Assembly (NCBI GenBank): GCA_040285825.1
Contig: JAUPSS010000005.1
Coordinates: 1,798,408 to 1,862,407, forward strand
Source of the DNA: Eukaryota sp. TZLM1-RC
Taxonomy: Eukaryota > Protista > Metamonada: BaSk clade
DNA: 64,000 nt
Direction of reading: 5' to 3'
Within the stretch, counting starts at the first letter, position 1; every line of letters begins with the position of its first letter. The notes beneath the pieces are model-generated. The model searched no databases and was not told the DNA's origin. It saw only the letters and a program-made list of their open reading frames with translations. Made by a program: the position numbers and the translations under genes. Shown one piece after another: positions 44,842 to 60,196 of this stretch.

Positions 44842-45930
44842 TACCTGGTTGATCCTGCCAGTAGGCATATGCTTGTCTCAAAGATTAAGCCATGCATGTC
44901 TAAGTTCAGGAGTTTTCTCCGAAACAGCGAATGGCTCATTAAATCAGTGATAATTTATTTGATAGTACTTACTACTTGGATAACCGTGGTAATTCTAGAG
45001 CTAATACATGCAGCAAATACTTCTTTTGAAGTATGCATTTATTAGATACAAAACCAATCCTGGCAACAGGTCTTTGGTGAATCATAATAACTATGCTGAT
45101 CGCATGTCTTCGGACAGCGACATATCATTTAAATCACTGCCCTATCAACTAAATCGTAAGGTAGTGGCTTACGATGGTGATGACGGGTAACGGGGAATTA
45201 GGGTTTGATTCCGGAGAGGGAGCCTGAGAAATGGCTACCACATCCAAGGAAGGCAGCAGGCGCGAAAATTACCCAATCTCATTACGAGGAGGTAGTGACA
45301 AAAAATAACAATACTGGGCTCTTTTGAGTTCGTAATTGGAATGAGTACAACTTAAAACCTTTAACGAGGAGCTACTAGAGGGCAAGTCTGGTGCCAGCAG
45401 CCGCGGTAATTCCAGCTCTAGTAGTGTATCTTAAAATTGCTGCGTTTAAATCGTCCGTAGTTGAATCTCAGAATTTGCGTATCTTCAGGTTTTCCTGTTG
45501 GTAAACAGATTCTTCTGTCTGAGGACACTAGTCATTTGCTTCGGCGGTGGCTATTGAATTCAGACCGTTTACTTTGAAAAAATTAGAGTGTTCAAAGCAG
45601 GCTTTATGCAATTGAATAACTTAGCATGGAATAATAGAATAGGACTTTGGTTCTGTTTTATTGGTTTTGAGAACTAGAGTAATGATTAAAAGGGACAGTT
45701 GGGGGCATTAGTACTCCGGTGTCAGAGGTGAAATTCTTGGATTGCCGGATGACTAACTACTGCGAAAGCATTTGCCAAAGATGTTCTCATTAATCAAGGT
45801 CGAAAGTTGGGGGATCGAAGACGATTAGACACCGTCGTAGTCTCAACCATAAACTATGCCGACTAGGGATTAGTAGGCGTTAAATACGACCCTATTAGCA
45901 CCTTATGGGAAACCATAAGTTCTTGGGTAA

Positions 45931-45989
<59 letters not shown>

Positions 45990-46438
45990 TTGTGGAGCCT
46001 GCGGCTTAATCTGACTCAACACGGAGAAACTTACCAGGTCCAGACGTGATAAGGATTGACAGATTGATAGCTCTTTCATGATCTTACGGTTAGTGGCGCA
46101 TGGCCGTTCTTAGTTGGTGGAGTGATTTGTCTGGTTAATTCCGATAACGAACGAGATCTAAATTGCTAACTAGTTTTATTCTATTTTCGGATAGTTTGAA
46201 CTTCTTAGCGAGACTGCTGTGGTTTTACACAGAGGAAGGTTTAGGCAATAACAGGTCTGTGATGCCCTTAGATGTTCTGGGCCGCACGCGCGCTACAATG
46301 GTAGGTACAACGAGTTTGTCCTTAACCGAAAGGTTTGGGTAATCTTGTGAATACCTATCTTGACTGGGATAGATCCTTGCAATTATGGGTCTTGAACGAG
46401 GAATAACTTGTAAGTGCATGTCATCAGCATGCGCTGAA

Positions 46439-46484
<46 letters not shown>

Positions 46485-46624
46485 GATGTTGAGGTGAAAT
46501 GTTTGGACTCAATGGGTTAAGCTGCAAAGCAAGACTTGTTGGGAAAATTCAGTGAATCTTTGCATCTAGAGGAAGGAGAAGTCGTAACAAGGTATCCGTA
46601 GGTGAACCTGCGGATGGATCATTG
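44842..46624 (+). rRNA. 18S: 18S (SSU) rRNA
   Basis: TACCTGGTTGATCCTGCCAG start; GTGCCAGCAGCCGCGGTAA; GTACACACCGCCCGTC; GGTGAACCTGCGGATGGATCATT end. Confidence 0.99.
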
Positions 46625-46722
46625 TCGTTTGTGAGCTTGGCTTGCCAAGTTTCACTTTAACTGAAACCTAATACCGAACCAACCCTTTTTATTATAAAAA
46701 CTAATAGTTTCTATGAAACATC

Positions 46723-46883
46723 CAACTTTCAGTGATGGATGTCTCGGCTCCTTTATCGATGAAGAACGCAGCGAATTGCGATACGTAATGTGAATTGCAG
46801 AATCTGTGAATCATCGAAACTTTGAACGCAAATGGTAGTTCTTTAGAGCTTCGGCTTTATTGAACTATACTTGAATCAGCGTC
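46723..46883 (+). rRNA. 5.8S: 5.8S rRNA (ITS1 ~98 nt, ITS2 ~160 nt)
   Basis: AACTTTCAGTGATGGATGTCTCGGCTC..GATGAAGAACGCAGCGAA..GAATTGCAGAA..CTTTGAACGCA. Confidence 0.95.
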
Positions 46884-47042
46884 GTCTTTTATTTTTCCAT
46901 TTCGGATAATTGGAATTGAAGGTTACTTCTTTTCTTAAATAATCAAATATATGATTGACTTTTGTCAACATTTATTGTTGAAGGCAACTTTTACATTAAT
47001 TGACGACTCATCTCTTTCATATATTGTCTTTTAGACATCATT

Positions 47043-47391
47043 TCGACCTGATTTCAAGTAAGATCACCCCCTGGACTTAAGCATATCAATAAGGGGAGGA
47101 AAAGAAAATAACTATGATTTCCTTAGTAGCGGCGAGCGAACAGGAAAAAGCTCAAGACTGAATCTTTATGATCTTTAGATTGTGAAGAGTTGTAGTCTAT
47201 GGAAACCAGTATTCGGTTCTCGATGTATAAGTCCTTTGGAAAAGGGTATCATGGAAGGTGAAAATCCTGTAAATGACATCGAAGTAATTGATTCACTACT
47301 GATTTTCCGAGAGTCGCGCTGTTTGGGAATGCAGCGTTAAATGTGGGGTAAGTTTCCCATAAAGCTAAATATAAAAGGAGACCGATAGTTC

Positions 47392-47422
<31 letters not shown>

Positions 47423-48263
47423 TCTGAAGAGAGAGTTAAAAGTACCTGAAATCACTGAAAGGATAAGCGATTGGAACTTGATATTGATAGCTTCGGCTGT
47501 CTTGCGTTGGAGTGATTTTGAAAATTGAGTGATTGTGGGGAAGGTAGCTATAATGAACTTCGGTTTATTGTAGTGTTATAGCCTCATAAATTGTTCTTTT
47601 TAAGAATCAGGAATACGGTTTTACCGAGACTCCAACATAAAAGGTTCAATTGTCCCGTCTTGAAACACGGACCAAGGAGTGTATCTCTTCTGCAAGTCGT
47701 AGGGTGTAAAAACCTGAAGGCGAAATGAAAGTAATTTTATGAGGGGAAGTTTCGACTGCACCCTCAACCAGTCCTTGCAAAGGGATCTGAGTATGAGCAG
47801 AATGGATACGACCCGAAAGCCGCTGAACTATGCCTGAATAGGATGAAGCCAGGGGAAACTCTGGTGGAAGTCCGTAGCGATGTTGACGTGCAAATCACTC
47901 GTCAAATTTGGGTATAGGGGCGAAAGACTCATCGAAGCGGCTAGTAGCTGGTTACGTTCGAAGTTTCCCCCAGGATAGCTGGAGCTTGTTTTAGTTTTGT
48001 CCGGTAAAGCTAATGATTAGAGGTACTAGGGACGCAATGTCCTTAGCCTATTCTCAAACTTTAAATGGGCAAGATTTGTGATGATACTTAAGTGATCGTT
48101 GCAATTGAATAATAGCTCTAAGTGGGCCATTTTTGGTAAGCAGAACTGGCGATGTGGGATGCTCCAAAAGACATGTTAAGGTGCCTAAGTGTGCACTCAT
48201 TTAGACCCCAGAAAAGGTGTTGGTTGATATTGACAGCAGGACGGTGGCCATGGAAGTCGGAAT

Positions 48264-48297
<34 letters not shown>

Positions 48298-49207
48298 TCA
48301 ACTAGCCCTGAAAATTGATGGCGCTAAAGTGTGCCACCTATACATGTCCATTAATTCATTTTATGAGTTAATGTGTAGAACGTCGTGGGGGTTGCGTAGA
48401 AGGTTCATTGTGAAATGGACTGGAGCAGCCTCTAGTGCAGATCTTGGTGGTAGTAGCAAATAAACAAGTTGGAATCTTGTTGACCGAAGTGGAGTAGGGT
48501 TCCATGGTAAAGGTATTCTGCCATGGGTTAGTCGGTCCTAAGGCACAGGTTAACTCTTTGAGAGGGGGCTTTTATAGCTCCGTCCTGTCGAAAGGGAAGC
48601 AGGTTAATATTCCTGCACCAACAGTGGGTGTTCGTGGTAACACAATCGAATCTAGAGATGTCGGGGAGGATCCTGGGAAGAGTTATCTTTTCTTATTAAC
48701 TGTCTATTGTCCATGGAATCTGTTTAACAGGAGAAGTGGATATAAGATAGGAAGAGCATTACGTTTTTGTAATGTCCGGTGTATTCTCAACGGCCCTTGA
48801 AAATCTAGAGGAGTAATCACTTCATTGTTGTCCGTACCGATAACCGCATCAGGTCTCCAAGGTGTGTAGCCTCTGGTCTATAGAAGAACGTAGGTAAGGG
48901 AAGTCGGCAAAATAGATCCGTAACTTCGGGATAAGGATTGGCTCTAGGGGCCTTGTGTAAGAGCCCTAGTGGTGACGCACTGAGCGTTGATGTGATTGGC
49001 AACAATTGCGTTGATGCGAGGTGTTGATCCATTGGGATTACTTTTATGCAATTAAAGGTCAACCTAGAACTGTAACGGACAAAGGGAACCCGACTGTTTA
49101 ATCGAAACAAAGCTTTCTGATGGCCGGAAACGGTGTTGACAGAAAGTGATTTCTGCTCAGTGCTCTGAATGTCATTGTGAAGAGATTCAATCAAGCACGG
49201 GTAAACA

Positions 49208-49252
<45 letters not shown>

Positions 49253-49253
49253 C

Positions 49254-49286
<33 letters not shown>

Positions 49287-49308
49287 GTTCCCACTGTCCC
49301 TACCTACC

Positions 49309-49344
<36 letters not shown>

Positions 49345-49350
49345 TAATTC

Positions 49351-49388
<38 letters not shown>

Positions 49389-49747
49389 TGATATTGTGAA
49401 CCGATTCAGGAGGTGTAGCGTACAGGGGAGTAGATTTATCTACGCCAATGAAACACCCTGACTCTTGACATTGGTTTGCTAACTTAATTAATCCGAAACA
49501 GGTTTCCTGTTTCAAGATTTAAGTGTCTTCGGATACGATCGGATTTAAGGACATTGTCAGATGGGGAGTTTGGCTGGGGCGGCACATCTCCAAAATAATA
49601 ACGGAGGTGTCCTAAGGTGAGCTCAATGAGAACAGAAATCTCATGTAGAACATAAGGGTAAAAGCTCACTTGATTTTGATTTTCAGTATGAATACAAACC
49701 AAGAAATTGTGGCCTAACGATCCTTTAACTATAAGAAACTTTTAGCT

Positions 49748-49790
<43 letters not shown>

Positions 49791-49892
49791 AGCCAAGCGT
49801 TCATAGCGACGTTGCTTTTTGATTCTTCGATGTCGGCTCTTCCTATCATTGAGAAGCAGAATTCTCAAAGCGTTGGATTGTTCACCCATTAA

Positions 49893-49948
<56 letters not shown>

Positions 49949-50345
49949 AATAATTGTCATCCTAATAGTAAAGCAACCCAGTACGAGAGGAACCGTTGTT
50001 TCGCATAATTGGTATTTACGCTTATCTGAAAAGATATTGGTGTGAAGCTAACATGCGTTGGATTATAGCTGAACGCCTCTAAGCTAGTATCCAACCTAGA
50101 AAGGATGATATATTGACCTGCAAATTTAATCGATAAAGATTAGGATTGTGTTTACACAGTCCCAATATCTCATCAGTGGGATTGATGTTTAGTCTAAGTA
50201 CTATTCATTGATCATTGAAACTATGAAGATTCGCAGGATCATGAAACCTTGGCAGACGACCAAGATACGGAACTCATTGCTGTAAGTGTAAGAGTATGGT
50301 TTTTATACGATTTACTGAGGCTCATATGAAGTTCCTAGTTTCGTA
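47043..50345 (+). rRNA. 28S: 28S (LSU) rRNA, uninterrupted
   Basis: ACCCCCTGGACTTAAGCATAT; CCGTCTTGAAACACGGACC; empty R2 site TTAAGGTAGCC (~49229-49239); sarcin-ricin loop AGTACGAGAGGAAC; terminal helix GTAAG..AGAGTA..TACGAT..CTGAG. Ends are approximate. Confidence 0.98.
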
Positions 50346-53300: not shown

Positions 53301-55209
53301 TTGTGATCAAACTTTGTGTGAAATTGTGTGTTAGTAATGTTGGCTATGTGTTACTTGATCAGTACAAACTCATGATTACATTTTCAAATGATTTTGTATA
53401 TATTTGAATTAATTGAGTGTATTAATTTTTAAACATTAAATTGTAAAAAAGTAAAAATCAAAAAGTATACAATTGAATGTTGTAAACTAATAAAACAATT
53501 GCTGTAAGTGTAAGAGTATCGTTTTTGATACGATTTACTGAGGCTCATATGAAGTTCCTAGTTTCGTATATTGACCAATGGTTGTTTATTACAATCATTG
53601 GTCAAATCTTTAAAGTCCATTTTGGGACAATTAATATAACAATTGTGGTGTTAAAGTCCGTGCTATGGTCATTTGATAGTCATTGGTATGATTGGTTGAA
53701 TGGTCATTGGTATGATTAGATGAGTTGCATGTAGTCTTTATGTACTAGATGTGATCAACTTGTGATCAAACTTTGTGTGAAATTGTGTGTTAGTAATGTT
53801 GGCTATGTGTTACTTGATCAGTACAAACTCATGATTACATTTTCAAATGATTTTGTATATATTTGAATTAATTGAGTGTATTAATTTTTAAACATTAAAT
53901 TGTAAAAAAGTAAAAATCAAAAAGTATACAATTGAATGTTGTAAACTAATAAAACAATTGCTGTAAGTGTAAGAGTATCGTTTTTGATACGATTTACTGA
54001 GGCTCATATGAAGTTCCTAGTTTCGTATATTGACCAATGGTTGTTTATTACAATCATTGGTCAAATCTTTAAAGTCCATTTTGGGACAATTAATATAACA
54101 ATTGTGGTGTTAAAGTCCGTGCTATGGTCATTTGATTAGTCATTGGTATGATTGGTTGAATGGTCATTGGTATGATTAGATGAGTTGCATGTAGTCTTTA
54201 TGTACTAGATGTGATCAACTTGTGATCAAACTTTGTGTGAAATTGTGTGTTAGTAATGTTGGCTATGTGTTACTTGATCAGTACAAACTCATGATTACAT
54301 TTTCAAATGATTTTGTATATATTTGAATTAATTGAGTGTATTAATTTTTAAACATTAAATTGTAAAAAAAGTAAAAAATCAAAAAGTATACAATTGAATG
54401 TTGTAAACTAATAAAACAATTGCTGTAAGTGTAAGAGTATCGTTTTTGATACGATTTACTGAGGCTCATATGAAGTTCCTAGTTTCGTATATTGACCAAT
54501 GGTTGTTTATTACAATCATTGGTCAAATCTTTAAAGTCCATTTTGGGACAATTAATATAACAATTGTGGTGTTAAAGTCCGTGCTATGGTCATTTGATTA
54601 GTCATTGGTATGATTGGTTGAATGGTCATTGGTATGATTAGATGAGTTGCATGTAGTCTTTATGTACTAGATGTGATCAACTTGTGATCAAACTTTGTGT
54701 GAAATTGTGTGTTAGTAATGTTGGCTATGTGTTACTTGATCAGTACAAACTCATGATTACATTTTCAAATGATTTTGTATATATTTGAATTAATTGAGTG
54801 TATTAATTTTTAAACATTAAATTGTAAAAAAAGTAAAAAATCAAAAAGTATACAATTGAATGTTGTAAACTAATAAAACAATTGCTGTAAGTGTAAGAGT
54901 ATCGTTTTGATACGATTTACTGAGGCTCATATGAAGTTCCTAGTTTCGTATATTGACCAATGGTTGTTTATTACAATCATTGGTCAAATCTTTAAAGTCC
55001 ATTTTGGGACAATTAATATAACAATTGTGGTGTTAAAGTCCGTGCTATGGTCATTTGATTAGTCATTGGTTGAATGGTCATTGGTATGATTAGATGAGTT
55101 GCATGTAGTCTTTATGTACTAGATGTGATCAACTTGTGATCAAACTTTGTGTGAAATTGTGTGTTAGTAATGTTGGCTATGTGTTACTTGATCAGTACAA
55201 ACTCATGAT
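50276..55209 (+). repeat. ~10.7 copies of the 461-bp spacer repeat
   Basis: Same unit; the first copy overlaps the 28S 3' end; the last is cut at AACTCATGAT by the retroelement. Confidence 0.97.
50348..50382 (+). terminator. 15-bp 3'ETS hairpin, candidate RNase III-type processing/termination signal (repeated in every spacer unit)
   Basis: TTGACCAATGGTTGT-TTATT-ACAATCATTGGTCAA immediately after the 28S end. Confidence 0.55.
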
Positions 55210-55239
55210 GTCCTATCTCCCTGTTCCCACCGCCATTGT

Positions 55240-58200
55240 ATGAGGCAGACATCTCTTACAGGGTTTTTTATGCCCTCAAAGTCTCAACCTTCTTTATCTC
55301 CTTCAGAATTCTCTTCTCTTTTGGAAGGTCTAGAAGAGTCCAACATGACTGCCGATGTCAGCGGCATCGAGCAGAATAGCCCTAGTGCTATAGAGCTGTC
55401 CGTGGCAGATTCTCATGAATCTGGCCGAAATCTAGTGTTGGCTTCTTCCTATGACCAAACTCCACATTTATATGCGGAAGATAAGTCCTCTTTCTCCATT
55501 TCACAACTTACCTCTGATGACCCACCCACTTCCTCCGATCAACTTTGCACTGACCCTTCCTCAGATTCTTTCAATCACATTTCTCCAATCTCCGTTTCAG
55601 ACGCTACTGAATTCTCTCTTCAAACAGCGCACTCTGATCCAGATAGTTCTCACCTTGCAACTCCATATGATAGTTATCAGCGCTCACCTGGTCTAGTGGA
55701 TAAGACCTTTGACTCAGAGGTTGCGGTCCTGAGTTCGAATCCCACCACACGCACATTGTCTAGTGCCTCTCCATTGGGAGGTGCTAATTCCAGCGATTCT
55801 CGTAGTGAGCTTCGGCTCGCTACAAATAACCACTGTGGTGGGAAGGGGGGTTTTTGCTCTGTGTCCCTTTGTGATGATCCCCTCTCTGCTGATCTCCAAA
55901 ATTTAGACCAAATTTCAGGTGTTTGTCAAAATCGTAGAGAAAGAAAGTTCTGCTGCTTTGTCTCGCTCTGCCCCAGAACTGAACCGTTCTCTAAGCGGTC
56001 TGGGTTGACAAGGCATTTGATGAAAATGCATCCTGATGTCAGCCTTGATGTCTTAAAAGCCAATGGATACACAAGATGTAGCTGCTCTGACATCATTTCT
56101 GTAGAAGGCATCGGGATGCATATAACTAAGAAAGGTTGTGCATTTTCTCTCAGTGAATCTGTCAATAATTCAGAGAGTCCTCTTCTTCCTTCTGAGGACT
56201 CTCCTATTCAATTGTACCATCAACCGATTAACCCAAGCCAACGTTATGGTCTTGGGTTTGGGTATCAACAGGGCCCTCTTGTGACTGAACCTGTTCGAGA
56301 TATTTCACATCCACCTGTTTGTCCTTCTGACCTTGATAGTTCTCCTGTTGTCTCTTTTGATGCCAATGATGATGGTGATGAATCTAATCCAATCATACTT
56401 CCTGATGACGATGGCCACATACTTGAATCGAATGCTTCCTCTGATATGGATGTTAATGTGAATCCCTTGGAGATTTACACAGATGGATCTTTTCTCAAGA
56501 AAAGAAATAAATCTGGCTTTGGGGGCTTTTATACTTTCAAGGATAAGCGATTCGAAATTTATGGCCCATCACGCCACAACACCCATAACGCAGCTGAGTT
56601 TGAAGCTGTTTTGATGACCATTAAATCCTTAGTGTTGCTCTCTCACTGTCCACAACACATTATCATTTTTTCTGACAGTAGCCTTGTTGTTGATTCTCTT
56701 AACCTAAAAGCATCCCTAAAGAATCCTACTGTCAAAAGAATCCGCAGCCAAATAAAGGATCTCATAAATAGTTCTCGTTTTAGACTATTCTCCTTCTCCT
56801 TTAAGAAAGTGTTGGCACATTCTGACAATACCAATAATAATGTTGCTGATGTTTTAGCAAAACGTGGCGCTAATGGCTCTGAATGTTCACTGCTGAAGTA
56901 TTTAAGAACACGTTATCATGTCCTTGAAGGCCCTATACCACTTTGTTCATTACCACCTGACCACTGTGAACACATTGCTGATAGTGATCCCCTTGACTCG
57001 TCCATTTTAGAAAAATCACACAATTGTCCTATCTGTCCCAGTTTCTTTTCCAAAGCAAGATCCTTATGCTGCCATATTGATACGCACCACTCCTCTATAG
57101 ACACTGACACATTACACATTAATAATCTGGTTCGCTGCCCAGTTTGCTTGAAGGTATTCTCATCGGTTGGTTTTGACAACCATTTCAAACGTCATGAGTC
57201 ACCGACTCTAGATATGCCCTGTATTTCTGATTCTTTATTTATTCAGCTGAGCAATGAAATTGCAAGCTTCACTTACAAACGGCTCAGTGATCGTCCCTCA
57301 TTCCGCTCTGCAGTCAAGTTGGTCACCCATTCTTCCCTGCCAATGGAACAAAAATGTAGATATCTTCTAGTGCTACCGGTAGTTTGCCTAAAGCTGGACA
57401 AAGGCTCATCACTTTTTAAACTTTTCCGATTCCAACACAGGGTTCACAAATTTAATATTGGTCAATGCGAAGATACTTCTTCCTTCTTTTGTAACACAAC
57501 CCCCATCAGACCACATACATTTAGCAATCGAGTCAATATAAAGAGAGTCAAAGAACTTATTCACGACAACGAACTGAGTCGCGCTATGAATCTGCTATCA
57601 AGAGAACCACCAACAGCAAACATAACTAATAACTCCATGCTAGAGCAATTGCAACACCTCCATCCAGCTGATCCAAATTTTTGTCAATATAACAATATGC
57701 TAACTGAACACTACTCCTACCACGACTCCTCTTCCGTAGCTGACGCAATCCTTAATTCCCCTATGACGGAAGGTGGCCCCTCCCACTGGCATGCCAAACT
57801 TTTGAAACAGTGTATTGATGACCACTTGGTGTCATGTGTACAGTATATAGCAAACGGCCTGCTCAGTGGCAAAATAAGTGAGCCCCTCAGACGTGTTCTC
57901 ACTTCCAGTAGATTGCTCGCCATCCCAAAGAAAAGTAATGGAGTGCGGCCCTTGGCAGTTGGAGAACTATTTTACCGCATTGCTGCCGGCCTTGCGCTAT
58001 CTAAAGTAAATGTTGACTATTTGATCAATTCAAATCAATATGGCGTGAAAGTCCCTGGTGGTGGTGAAGCTATTGTCCATTCAATTCGTAGTAATCTAGG
58101 CCTATCTTTCGAAAAACTGATCAAGTTTGATGTGCGCAATGCATTCAATGAGGTCGATCGTTGTCAGCTTGCCCAAGCTGTTGCTGAATATTGTCCTTTG

Positions 58201-59742
58201 CTGTTCCCATTCTTTAAAGCTAGCTATCTGAGCCCTTCCACATTACATTTTAGAAACTCAGTTATTTTCTCAGAACGTGGTGTTCGACAAGGCGATCCCC
58301 TCGGTCCCTTGCTATTTTCAACTGCCCTTGTCCCGTTTACAACACAGCTCCGTACCCTGCACCCATCCTGTCATTTTTATTTGTATTTAGATGACCTCTT
58401 TGTTCTTTGCAACGACCATGAAACTGATGCTATTGTTGGGACTGTTTCAAGCTTTATCCAAGACATTGGTCTTGAAGTCAATCTTGACAAAACTGCTGTT
58501 GTCTCTAGCAATGACAATTTCGAGGTGCTTGGTGCACATTTTGGCCCAAACGCCGAAGATGATCTTTCAAGCTCACTCCCACCAATGACTAGTTCTCTGT
58601 TGAAATGTCTCGAATCGCTGACGTTACAAGAGCAATTGCTTCTTGTGAGACACTGCATCAACACCAAACTGTCCTTTCATGCACGTGTTCATCGCCCAGC
58701 AGTCAGCAAGAATCCCCTCATTAGTTGTTTTCATCAAATAGTTTCTTTTGTTTCTTCGGCACTTGGGGTTGTTCCTTTGTTTCCTCAGTTGATTTCTCTC
58801 CCGTCAGCCAGATTTGGAGGACTCGGTCTCACAAATTATGGGGAAATAGCTCATTTGTGCTTCGCAGCCTCCTACATCACCAGCAATAGGACTTTAAACC
58901 TCTTCCACTCTTCATTGCCACTTGATGATTTAGATCTTATGTGCGCTGAATCATTATTTCATGAACTTGGTACAGCTACCAACTCCCCCAACTTATCAAA
59001 ACTTCAAGCTCTCTTAACTCAAAACCACTTTTTGGAGACTCTGAATTCTTTGACTAGGGACTTTAGATCCAAGCCTGCTGTACTCGCTTCATTTAGGTCG
59101 CCGGTAACTGACCCAGCCATAGCACCCATCCCAATCAAATATGAAAACGACGTTCTAATCAATTGCAAACCACTGTCTCAATCACTTTTATTTATCAATC
59201 CATCTGAGGAACCTGTTGACGATTCATTGCTCAAGTATTTCTTAAGAACCCGCCTCCTCTGTTCTGAATTTGTACATCACTGTCCCTTTTGTAAACATGA
59301 ATCCAATTCTCAGTATCATTCAGCCAATTGCGAACAACTATCATCTATGCGAATTAGAAGACATGATGATGTGGTTGAATTGATATCGCAACTGACAGGC
59401 TTACTCAAAGAACAGAACGTAGGTAACGGCAGAGTTGACCTTATTCGTCCCGATGGCAGCGAGTGTTATGACCTCACTTTAGTCGGTGGATATTCTACCC
59501 CTCTCAATACACTGATTGAACGCCGTAGAATGTCGAAAATTGGTAAATATTCTCACCATGTTCCTTTGGTTCCACTAATCGCATTTCCTTCTGGAGGCAT
59601 CGAACGAAGTTTTGTAAATTTTTTGCGTAAAAAAGAGATAGGCTCTTATGGGAAAAAAATATCGCTGTCATTTATAAGATCATGCTTTAAAATGAGCAAA
59701 GTGTATGCCCGACTTGCCATTTGTGATCTTAGTGATGATTGA
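55240..59742 (+). CDS. Retrotransposon polyprotein: PIP box - ZnF - RNase H - 2x C2H2 - RT - zinc knuckle - RLE (1500 aa)
   Basis: QTSLTGFF; IYTDGS/AAEFEA/FSDS/AHS..N..AD; LQHLHP, GVRPLAVGE, QYGV..GGEAIVH, DVRNAFN, GVRQGDPLGPLLF, YLDD, GGLG; CPFC..H...C, RRHD, RVDL..D..K..KY. Confidence 0.95.
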   Translation: MRQTSLTGFFMPSKSQPSLSPSEFSSLLEGLEESNMTADVSGIEQNSPSAIELSVADSHESGRNLVLASSYDQTPHLYAEDKSSFSISQLTSDDPPTSSDQLCTDPSSDSFNHISPISVSDATEFSLQTAHSDPDSSHLATPYDSYQRSPGLVDKTFDSEVAVLSSNPTTRTLSSASPLGGANSSDSRSELRLATNNHCGGKGGFCSVSLCDDPLSADLQNLDQISGVCQNRRERKFCCFVSLCPRTEPFSKRSGLTRHLMKMHPDVSLDVLKANGYTRCSCSDIISVEGIGMHITKKGCAFSLSESVNNSESPLLPSEDSPIQLYHQPINPSQRYGLGFGYQQGPLVTEPVRDISHPPVCPSDLDSSPVVSFDANDDGDESNPIILPDDDGHILESNASSDMDVNVNPLEIYTDGSFLKKRNKSGFGGFYTFKDKRFEIYGPSRHNTHNAAEFEAVLMTIKSLVLLSHCPQHIIIFSDSSLVVDSLNLKASLKNPTVKRIRSQIKDLINSSRFRLFSFSFKKVLAHSDNTNNNVADVLAKRGANGSECSLLKYLRTRYHVLEGPIPLCSLPPDHCEHIADSDPLDSSILEKSHNCPICPSFFSKARSLCCHIDTHHSSIDTDTLHINNLVRCPVCLKVFSSVGFDNHFKRHESPTLDMPCISDSLFIQLSNEIASFTYKRLSDRPSFRSAVKLVTHSSLPMEQKCRYLLVLPVVCLKLDKGSSLFKLFRFQHRVHKFNIGQCEDTSSFFCNTTPIRPHTFSNRVNIKRVKELIHDNELSRAMNLLSREPPTANITNNSMLEQLQHLHPADPNFCQYNNMLTEHYSYHDSSSVADAILNSPMTEGGPSHWHAKLLKQCIDDHLVSCVQYIANGLLSGKISEPLRRVLTSSRLLAIPKKSNGVRPLAVGELFYRIAAGLALSKVNVDYLINSNQYGVKVPGGGEAIVHSIRSNLGLSFEKLIKFDVRNAFNEVDRCQLAQAVAEYCPLLFPFFKASYLSPSTLHFRNSVIFSERGVRQGDPLGPLLFSTALVPFTTQLRTLHPSCHFYLYLDDLFVLCNDHETDAIVGTVSSFIQDIGLEVNLDKTAVVSSNDNFEVLGAHFGPNAEDDLSSSLPPMTSSLLKCLESLTLQEQLLLVRHCINTKLSFHARVHRPAVSKNPLISCFHQIVSFVSSALGVVPLFPQLISLPSARFGGLGLTNYGEIAHLCFAASYITSNRTLNLFHSSLPLDDLDLMCAESLFHELGTATNSPNLSKLQALLTQNHFLETLNSLTRDFRSKPAVLASFRSPVTDPAIAPIPIKYENDVLINCKPLSQSLLFINPSEEPVDDSLLKYFLRTRLLCSEFVHHCPFCKHESNSQYHSANCEQLSSMRIRRHDDVVELISQLTGLLKEQNVGNGRVDLIRPDGSECYDLTLVGGYSTPLNTLIERRRMSKIGKYSHHVPLVPLIAFPSGGIERSFVNFLRKKEIGSYGKKISLSFIRSCFKMSKVYARLAICDLSDD
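55682..55855 (+). ncRNA. Putative Pol III tRNA-like structured RNA embedded in the retrotransposon ORF
   Basis: A box TGGTCTAGTGG (55689), B box GAGTTCGAATC (55731), three-way junction with a UUCG hairpin, TTTTT at 55851-55855. Confidence 0.5.
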
Positions 59743-59794
59743 TCGCTTTAGTTATAGTTTCTTCATTGTGATTGAACATTTCTTTCTTTAATAA

Positions 59795-60196
59795 ACTGAA
59801 TAATTGTCATCCTAATAGTAAAGCAACCCAGTACGAGAGGAACCGTTGTTTCGCATAATTGGTATTTACGCTTATCTGAAAAGATATTGGTGTGAAGCTA
59901 ACATGCGTTGGATTATAGCTGAACGCCTCTAAGCTAGTATCCAACCTAGAAAGGATGATATATTGACCTACAAATTTAATCGATAAAGATTAGGATTGTG
60001 TTTACACAGTCCCAATATCTCATCAGTGGGATTGATGTTTAGTCTAAGTACTATTCATTGATCATTGAAACTATGAAGATTCGCAGGATCATGAAACCTT
60101 GGTAGACGACCAAGATACGGAACTCATTGCTGTAAGTGTAAGAGTATCGTTTTTGATACGATTTACTGAGGCTCATATGAAGTTCCTAGTTTCGTA
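59795..60196 (+). rRNA. 28S: Partial 28S rRNA (3'-terminal ~400 nt only)
   Basis: Duplicate of 49945-50345 with 4 visible differences. Confidence 0.95.

Follow-up and report, generated by a model that had tools for sequence, protein, structure and literature searches.

A segment of 174 nucleotides (nt; positions 55682–55855) in a long interspersed nuclear element (LINE) of the metamonad Skoliomonas litria was found to carry an A box and a B box in the spacing of a transfer RNA (tRNA), followed by a very stable predicted RNA fold and a T run, all within the open reading frame (ORF) of the element. The analyzed DNA, referred to as the window, comprises 64,000 nt of contig JAUPSS010000005.1 (assembly GCA_040285825.1, 'Eukaryota sp. 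TZLM1-RC'); this organism is the free-living metamonad S. litria (PMC11603281). The segment lies in frame in, and is inherited with, a LINE of the restriction-like endonuclease (RLE) type that is specific for the ribosomal DNA (rDNA). The favoured reading, with a probability of about 40%, is a putative RNA polymerase III (Pol III) unit with a type 2 promoter, which would be read from ~55678–55682 to the T run. The arrangement suggests that the same DNA may also yield a small RNA.

Two modules can be distinguished by their sequence. The first, of ~65 nt, appears to be a tRNA-derived head in which the cloverleaf has decayed and the two promoter boxes are exact in tRNA geometry. The second is a predicted, very stable multi-way junction, ancestrally probably formed by a closing stem (P1) and three hairpins (H1 to H3), followed by six G and five T residues (G6T5). 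The features are listed below.

55210–59794, plus strand: host element, an RLE-type non-LTR (long terminal repeat) retrotransposon (LINE) inserted in the 28S rDNA, delimited by copy limits and the 28S junction
55240–59742, plus strand: single ORF of 1500 amino acids (aa), covering 98% of the host LINE
55682–55752, plus strand: tRNA-derived head with intact D-arm and decayed anticodon, T and acceptor stems (ARAGORN call at the 80% threshold, 55685–55752)
55689–55699, plus strand: A box TGGTCTAGTGG, exact to TRGYNNARNGG
55733–55742, plus strand: B box core GTTCGAATCC, exact to GTTCRANNCC
55740–55749, plus strand: P1 5′ strand TCCCACCACA, an inverted repeat overlapping the end of the B box (pairing probability in context 0.96)
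55761–55786, plus strand: H1, a predicted 11-bp hairpin including G-U pairs, with CATT loop (core 55763–55784)
55793–55794, plus strand: site of the H2 deletion in the window copy (24-nt hairpin missing), from five other copies and contigs
55802–55823, plus strand: H3, a predicted 9-bp hairpin with C(UUCG)G loop (pairing probability 1.00)
55834–55843, plus strand: P1 3′ strand TGTGGTGGGA, forming a perfect 10-bp inverted repeat with 55740–55749
55845–55855, plus strand: G6 (55845–55850), then T5 (55851–55855), a possible Pol III terminator

Promoter boxes and predicted fold

The A box lies within a perfect D-arm (GTCT / AGTGGATA / AGAC), and the distance from its start to the start of the B box was found to be 44 nt, i.e., the spacing of tRNAs. 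The combined pattern (TRGYNNARNGG ... GTTCRANNCC) has a single occurrence in the 64-kb window, and 200 shuffles yielded none. Both boxes are invariant in the TZLM1-RC copies that reach them (5/5). Since no run of four T residues (T4) occurs between the A box and T5, all sequence features of a type 2 Pol III unit (A box, B box, later T run and no earlier T4) were found. Further support for such a unit comes from the very stable stem located just ahead of T5. In the frameshifted copy L010, G5T4 stands in the place of G6T5.

A sequence-only reading of this stretch had described the A box, the D-arm, the 10-bp stem, two hairpins, G6T5 and the open frame, and all of these could be recovered at their places. 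The B box was also present, with its position corrected from 55731–55741 to the core given above. The statement that the segment is not a tRNA holds as well. Only the D-arm pairs, the acceptor and T stems being unpaired, and a cloverleaf could not be formed. ARAGORN detected no tRNA in the segment at its default, 95% and 90% thresholds, with a weak sub-threshold call at 80%, and the Rfam search of the segment gave no tRNA match at E ≤10. A tRNA gene was therefore ruled out. No Rfam family matched the three-hairpin or the two-hairpin form, and a 20-bit minus-strand match to Plastid-ycf2 corresponds to the reverse complement of the tRNA-like head only.

The minimum free energy of the segment was calculated to be −69.9 kcal/mol, with a z-score of −4.44 compared to 200 dinucleotide shuffles. 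Codon-preserving shuffles had been named as a check on which the fold could fail; among 500 synonymous-codon resamplings none was as stable (z −4.65). Permutation of the codons within the segment resulted in a z-score of −3.5. Across the element, the segment ranks first in stability of 883 windows of 175 nt (−70.6 vs. a mean of −33.8). In a context of 599 nt, the junction helices were predicted with pairing probabilities of 0.82–1.0, and the local helices of the tRNA-like head with just 0.03–0.09.

Stable folds are generally common in the first 1.1 kb of the element. A second closed multi-branch fold, with a long closing stem around three hairpins, was found at 55327–55456 inside the N-terminal part of the ORF (−63.7 kcal/mol over the 211 nt of 55300–55510, z −3.24), and 55305–55500 ranks second in stability within the element. 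Nested inverted repeats with arms of 9–13 nt (56022–56147) and a perfect 10-bp hairpin (56173–56203) are located in the zinc-finger coding region.

The known reader of A and B boxes is TFIIIC, which binds them on the DNA of type 2 Pol III promoters. In the segment, TFIIIC would bind to the two boxes, and Pol III would start ~10 nt upstream of the A box and stop at T5. The predicted product is a small sense RNA that has a structured body and ends in oligo-U; its length would be ~175 nt for the window copy and ~199 nt for the other copies. Within the long LINE transcript, the same DNA would encode a serine-rich low-complexity linker. A possible role of the RNA is the binding of the element's own protein. 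The suggestion that the boxes serve as an internal promoter for the LINE itself is not supported, because T5 would end a Pol III transcript after ~175–200 nt.

A more far-reaching version of the Pol III unit would be a dual-coding LINE ORF with a working Pol III gene that is conserved across Skoliomonas and whose RNA or TFIIIC-bound site serves the element. As a whole, this version is tentative and rather doubtful. The RNA could act as a protein-binding cofactor supplied in trans, like the 5′ RNA of R2, or the bound site could serve as a chromatin boundary and so prevent rDNA-embedded copies from becoming inaccessible.

Conservation among copies and in a related lineage

Five further copies of the family were fetched from the TZLM1-RC genome via their proteins (L002_A, L002_B, L005, L010 and L004). 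The first four are 97–98% identical and full-length and contain the whole segment. L004 is ~90% identical and 5′-truncated inside the B box, and carries the 3′ three quarters of the segment. In addition, contigs of three DNA-like sequencing runs with two organism labels were aligned at a likeness of at least 80%.

An extra 24 nt after position 55793 were identified in all five other copies. They form a perfect 10–11-bp hairpin (H2) with a GCAA loop. Two of the three sequencing runs also yielded contigs with this insert, and the third run contains a loose end consistent with it. The H2-bearing form has a length of 199 nt and a predicted energy of −82.9 kcal/mol (z −5.1). The deletion in the window copy is in frame and lies between CGAT direct repeats. 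Because all five other copies carry H2, the predicted ancestral structure is a four-way junction (P1, H1, H2 with GCAA and H3 with C(UUCG)G), and the three-way form is derived. The three-way junction of the sequence-only reading is thus right for the window copy and not for the ancestral form. H1 differs among the copies at 55766 (C/T) and 55777 (G/A), with pairing kept in both cases.

In L004, the segment part is identical at 146 of 150 positions, compared to ~90% identity downstream. In a 78% copy (L009), in which homology starts in H3, the joint and the P1 3′ strand are identical at 26 of 26 positions and H3 is decayed. A hairpin of L009 at the place of H2 was not counted as covariation, since its arm sequences differ and the local alignment starts in H3, which makes homology there doubtful. 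L003, considered as a diverged homologue of the junction, was rejected as evidence; it is decayed, AT-shifted, chimeric and fused to spacer repeats.

Related LINEs were found in Skoliomonas sp. GEM-RC (assembly GCA_040285855.1, loci L006 and L007) by an exhaustive protein search. Their proteins are 41–46% identical to the host ORF over the matched stretches, including the reverse transcriptase (RT). The elements are followed by 28S-like sequence, 78–79% identical to the 3′ part of the 28S flanking the host LINE. The N-terminal regions could not be aligned with the host ORF, except for the zinc-finger part.

In L006:3351–3404 (also L007:3160), the A box is exact and the B box GTTCGGTTCC has one mismatch. 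Spacing (44 nt) and codon phase are identical to the window copy, and 15 of 16 specified positions are kept. This box pair is the sole match with at most one mismatch on both strands of the loci fetched by then. The chance of such a match was determined to be 0.004 for the 1.9-kb N-terminal ORF part, with any spacing of 36–61 allowed. Synonymous-codon resampling spelled the boxes in 3e-4 of the trials in each lineage. The peptides across the box region differ at 13 of 20 positions and are identical at seven. Box positions are conserved where the codons differ in amino acid (P/G, G/S and L/A). In GEM-RC, conservation does not extend to the D, T and acceptor stems.

From these comparisons, the boxes look constrained as nucleotides, and a unit read by TFIIIC and Pol III is therefore favoured. 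It was ranked first because the boxes and their geometry are kept across two lineages, whereas neither the tRNA fold nor the peptide is. The pattern of kept boxes and lost stems matches that of tRNA-derived heads of short interspersed nuclear elements (SINEs), in which the promoter is selected and the tRNA fold is not.

Several points weigh against this reading. The ungapped 48-nt alignment between the two species is not significant by itself (30/48, p 0.11), the GEM-RC match was spotted by eye before it was tested, and the comparison rests on two divergent lineages only. The junction was not found in GEM-RC. Instead, ~45 nt further downstream, 90 nt are enclosed by a different stem of 15 bp, which is preceded by a T4 run. 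On sequence grounds, the junction is lineage-specific. Furthermore, the window copy keeps an intact ORF without H2, so that H2 is dispensable for coding. Covariation across the copies had also been proposed as a check: none of the 41 pairs is broken, three changes are one-sided and none is compensatory, in a test without power. The three runs containing the segment look like DNA, and a fourth run lacks the segment. T5 is a candidate terminator by general rules, and the Pol III terminator rules of metamonads may differ.

Word-based protein searches for more lineages returned same-genome or GEM-RC copies only, a third lineage with the N-terminus was not found in an exhaustive representative protein search, and metagenome scans for further lineages gave no matches.

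The GEM-RC region shows folds of its own. At L006:3285–3375, 28-nt arms with 75% complementarity pair and include the A box, the 15-bp stem around 90 nt is located at L006:3449–3568, and the whole region folds at a z-score of −3.8.

Some joints in the S. litria copies were also recorded. A tRNA T-arm-like fragment GGGTTCGATTCCC was found twice in L004 (6560–6590 and 8470–8500), ~60 nt upstream of a 5′-truncated LINE fragment, and could be what remains of tRNA-LINE chimeras. A second LINE family, P0002 (L003:3464–3985; 41% aa identity), is 89% identical to the window over 55797–56310 and then switches abruptly. The break at 56310 coincides with a loose end in all three runs, and LINE families seem to have swapped the 5′ module by recombination. 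At 55873–55912, contigs of the runs X1 and X2 contain a joint that goes back by 40 nt with five extra letters; some copies therefore hold a tandem duplication of ~45 nt just downstream of the segment.

Alternative explanations

The segment could instead act in cis, as a 5′ RNA domain of the full-length LINE transcript that consists of the junction and the fold at 55327–55456 and has a protein-binding or regulatory function, the boxes being a relic. This explanation is possible, if on the unlikely side, and it is compatible with a Pol III unit. The untranslated regions (UTRs) of the LINE have a length of just 30 nt (5′) and 52 nt (3′), which would place most cis signals in the ORF. The two most stable stretches of the element are the junction and 55305–55500, the junction helices are robust in the 599-nt context, two of the hairpins are capped by UUCG and GCAA loops, and each of the three stem substitutions keeps pairing. 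The segment in L004 and the joint with the P1 3′ strand in L009 are conserved above their flanks, and R2Bm provides a precedent (10.1101/2023.04.07.536001). However, the junction is absent or different in GEM-RC, H2 was lost in a copy with an intact ORF, and the copies show no compensatory covariation. In addition, a cis-acting domain leaves the retention of the boxes across species, with the stems lost, unexplained.

A functionless relic appears less probable still. A tRNA, a tRNA-derived SINE or a copy of a Pol III RNA would have been taken in frame into a loose N-terminal linker, e.g., by RT template switching, and the hairpins would stem from template-switch mutation. The low-complexity, serine-rich setting without a Pfam domain, the loss of H2 without damage to the ORF and the T-arm-like fragment upstream of the truncated LINE piece in L004 are consistent with this origin. 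That the segment is shared among the S. litria copies says little, since these are 97–98% alike. On the other hand, 15 of 16 box positions survive with spacing and phase amid GEM-RC sequence that cannot be aligned, and the peptide does not explain this survival (3e-4). Conservation above the flanks in L004 also argues against a relic; in L009, it comprises only the joint and the P1 3′ strand, and H3 is decayed.

For the related proposal of a SINE absorbed in frame, the contigs pass straight through the segment, which they contain in LINE context only. Neither loose ends at 55682 or 55855 nor excess depth were found in the contigs of the three runs, in which copies of less than 80% likeness would escape. 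No second copy of the segment was detected in the window or in the flanks of the fetched loci. The segment ends in G6T5, and neither the LINE 3′ end nor any other part of the window resembles it. A dispersed tRNA-derived SINE, for which many copies and a shared, A-rich or simple-repeat 3′ tail would be typical, was rejected for copies of at least 80% likeness. A presently dispersed SINE family is unsupported because the contigs contain the segment in LINE context alone, and an ancient origin of that kind is possible.

An RNA processing signal had been proposed as a substitute for the hepatitis delta virus (HDV) ribozyme of R2. In this case, the head would be cut by RNase P/Z, or a ribozyme at this place would release the LINE RNA from co-transcription by Pol I. 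This is very improbable and not supported. The element does lie in 28S rDNA, and an HDV-like ribozyme above threshold was not found at its 5′ end. However, the acceptor and T stems are unpaired, no ribozyme family matched the segment at E ≤10, and a cut would split the ORF, severing the first 147 codons including the N-terminus, with the next in-frame ATG not before aa 261. A match below threshold to the HDV-like CPEB3 ribozyme model, outside the segment (55350–55436, plus strand), reached 14.4 bits compared to a gathering score of 35 (E 0.19–0.93), consists mainly of one hairpin and is probably due to chance.

Equally hard to credit is conservation at the peptide level only, with the motifs G.V.K...SE.A...S.P and CGG[KR] and incidental boxes: seven of 20 residues are identical and CGG[KR] follows in both species, but the boxes seldom appear when synonymous codons are resampled for either peptide, box positions are kept at differing amino acids, and the box region has no domain match.

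Related systems and the host element

Like the heads of tRNA-derived SINEs, the segment has kept A and B boxes and their spacing, shows a decayed cloverleaf and an unrelated structured body, and would give an RNA of ~175–200 nt. It differs from these SINEs in that it was found in the LINE only and has no 3′ tail in common with it. SINEs with a tRNA head are known to borrow 3′ ends from LINEs; here, the head lies in frame in the LINE's own ORF and was inherited with it in two species.

In R2Bm of the silkworm, the 5′ ORF holds a protein-binding 'three-claw' RNA of 323 nt, which regulates second-strand cleavage (10.1101/2023.04.07.536001). The S. litria LINE is similar to this R2-type arrangement, as a stable structured RNA, here a predicted fold, lies in the 5′ ORF part of an rDNA-specific RLE-type LINE. 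In such a setting, the same bases code for protein and RNA structure because the RNA domain lies within the ORF. The earlier claim that an RT ORF dual-coding a structured RNA would be new is therefore too strong. Sequence or fold similarity between the two was not found; the R2 RNA contains a pseudoknot and has no tRNA-type promoter boxes.

The first 77 nt of L1Tc (Pr77/L1TcRz) act as an internal promoter on the DNA and as an HDV-like ribozyme in the RNA (PMC3383444). As in L1Tc, a short stretch near the 5′ end of a LINE would have two roles, the second of which is putative here. Pr77 is Pol II-dependent and occupies the extreme 5′ end of L1Tc, from where it drives the entire element. The boxes of the segment are of Pol III type, are located 480 nt downstream of the start of their LINE and are followed by T5, which would stop transcription early.

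Among LTR retrotransposons, Cassandra (5S-like) and Helenus/Ajax are described as carrying modules derived from small-RNA genes (PMC10886601). They resemble the present case in having sequence derived from Pol III small-RNA genes as a standing part of a retrotransposon, and differ from it in being non-autonomous with the module in non-coding LTRs; here, the LINE is autonomous and the module is coding.

The single rDNA unit of the window is located at 44842–50344 and is accompanied by spacer satellite. To our knowledge, no case of a conserved tRNA-type Pol III promoter in frame within an autonomous LINE ORF across species has been described. If the unit is active, a single DNA stretch would be read in three ways, as protein, Pol III promoter and structured RNA. 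Such a unit could illustrate how SINE-like RNAs emerge from, or are taken up by, their LINE partners, and it would offer a handle on the expression of rDNA-resident LINEs in the deep-branching, barely studied Metamonada. If the unit is inactive, the case would clearly exemplify how a tRNA-derived sequence can be exapted to code for protein.

The 5′ limit of the host LINE is common to all copies and agrees with loose ends of the contigs at 55209/55210. At its 3′ junction (59794/59795), the element is joined to 28S sequence that corresponds to window position 49945. This site shortly precedes the sarcin-ricin loop sequence and is ~400 nt away from the 3′ end of the 28S. The stretch 59795–60196 is 28S and lies outside the LINE. 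A structured 3′ UTR considered at 59890–60069 (z −5.1) was withdrawn because this stretch is 28S rRNA downstream of the insertion.

The host ORF contains an RNase H domain (aa 410–544) and an RT domain (aa 895–1100). The segment encodes aa 148–206, a serine-rich low-complexity region without Pfam domain matches, and is open in the used reading frame only. The start of the ORF, MRQTSLTGFF (55246–55269), fits the pattern Qxx[LIM]xxFF of the PCNA-interacting protein (PIP) box; this PIP-like N-terminus lies within the 147 codons ahead of the segment.

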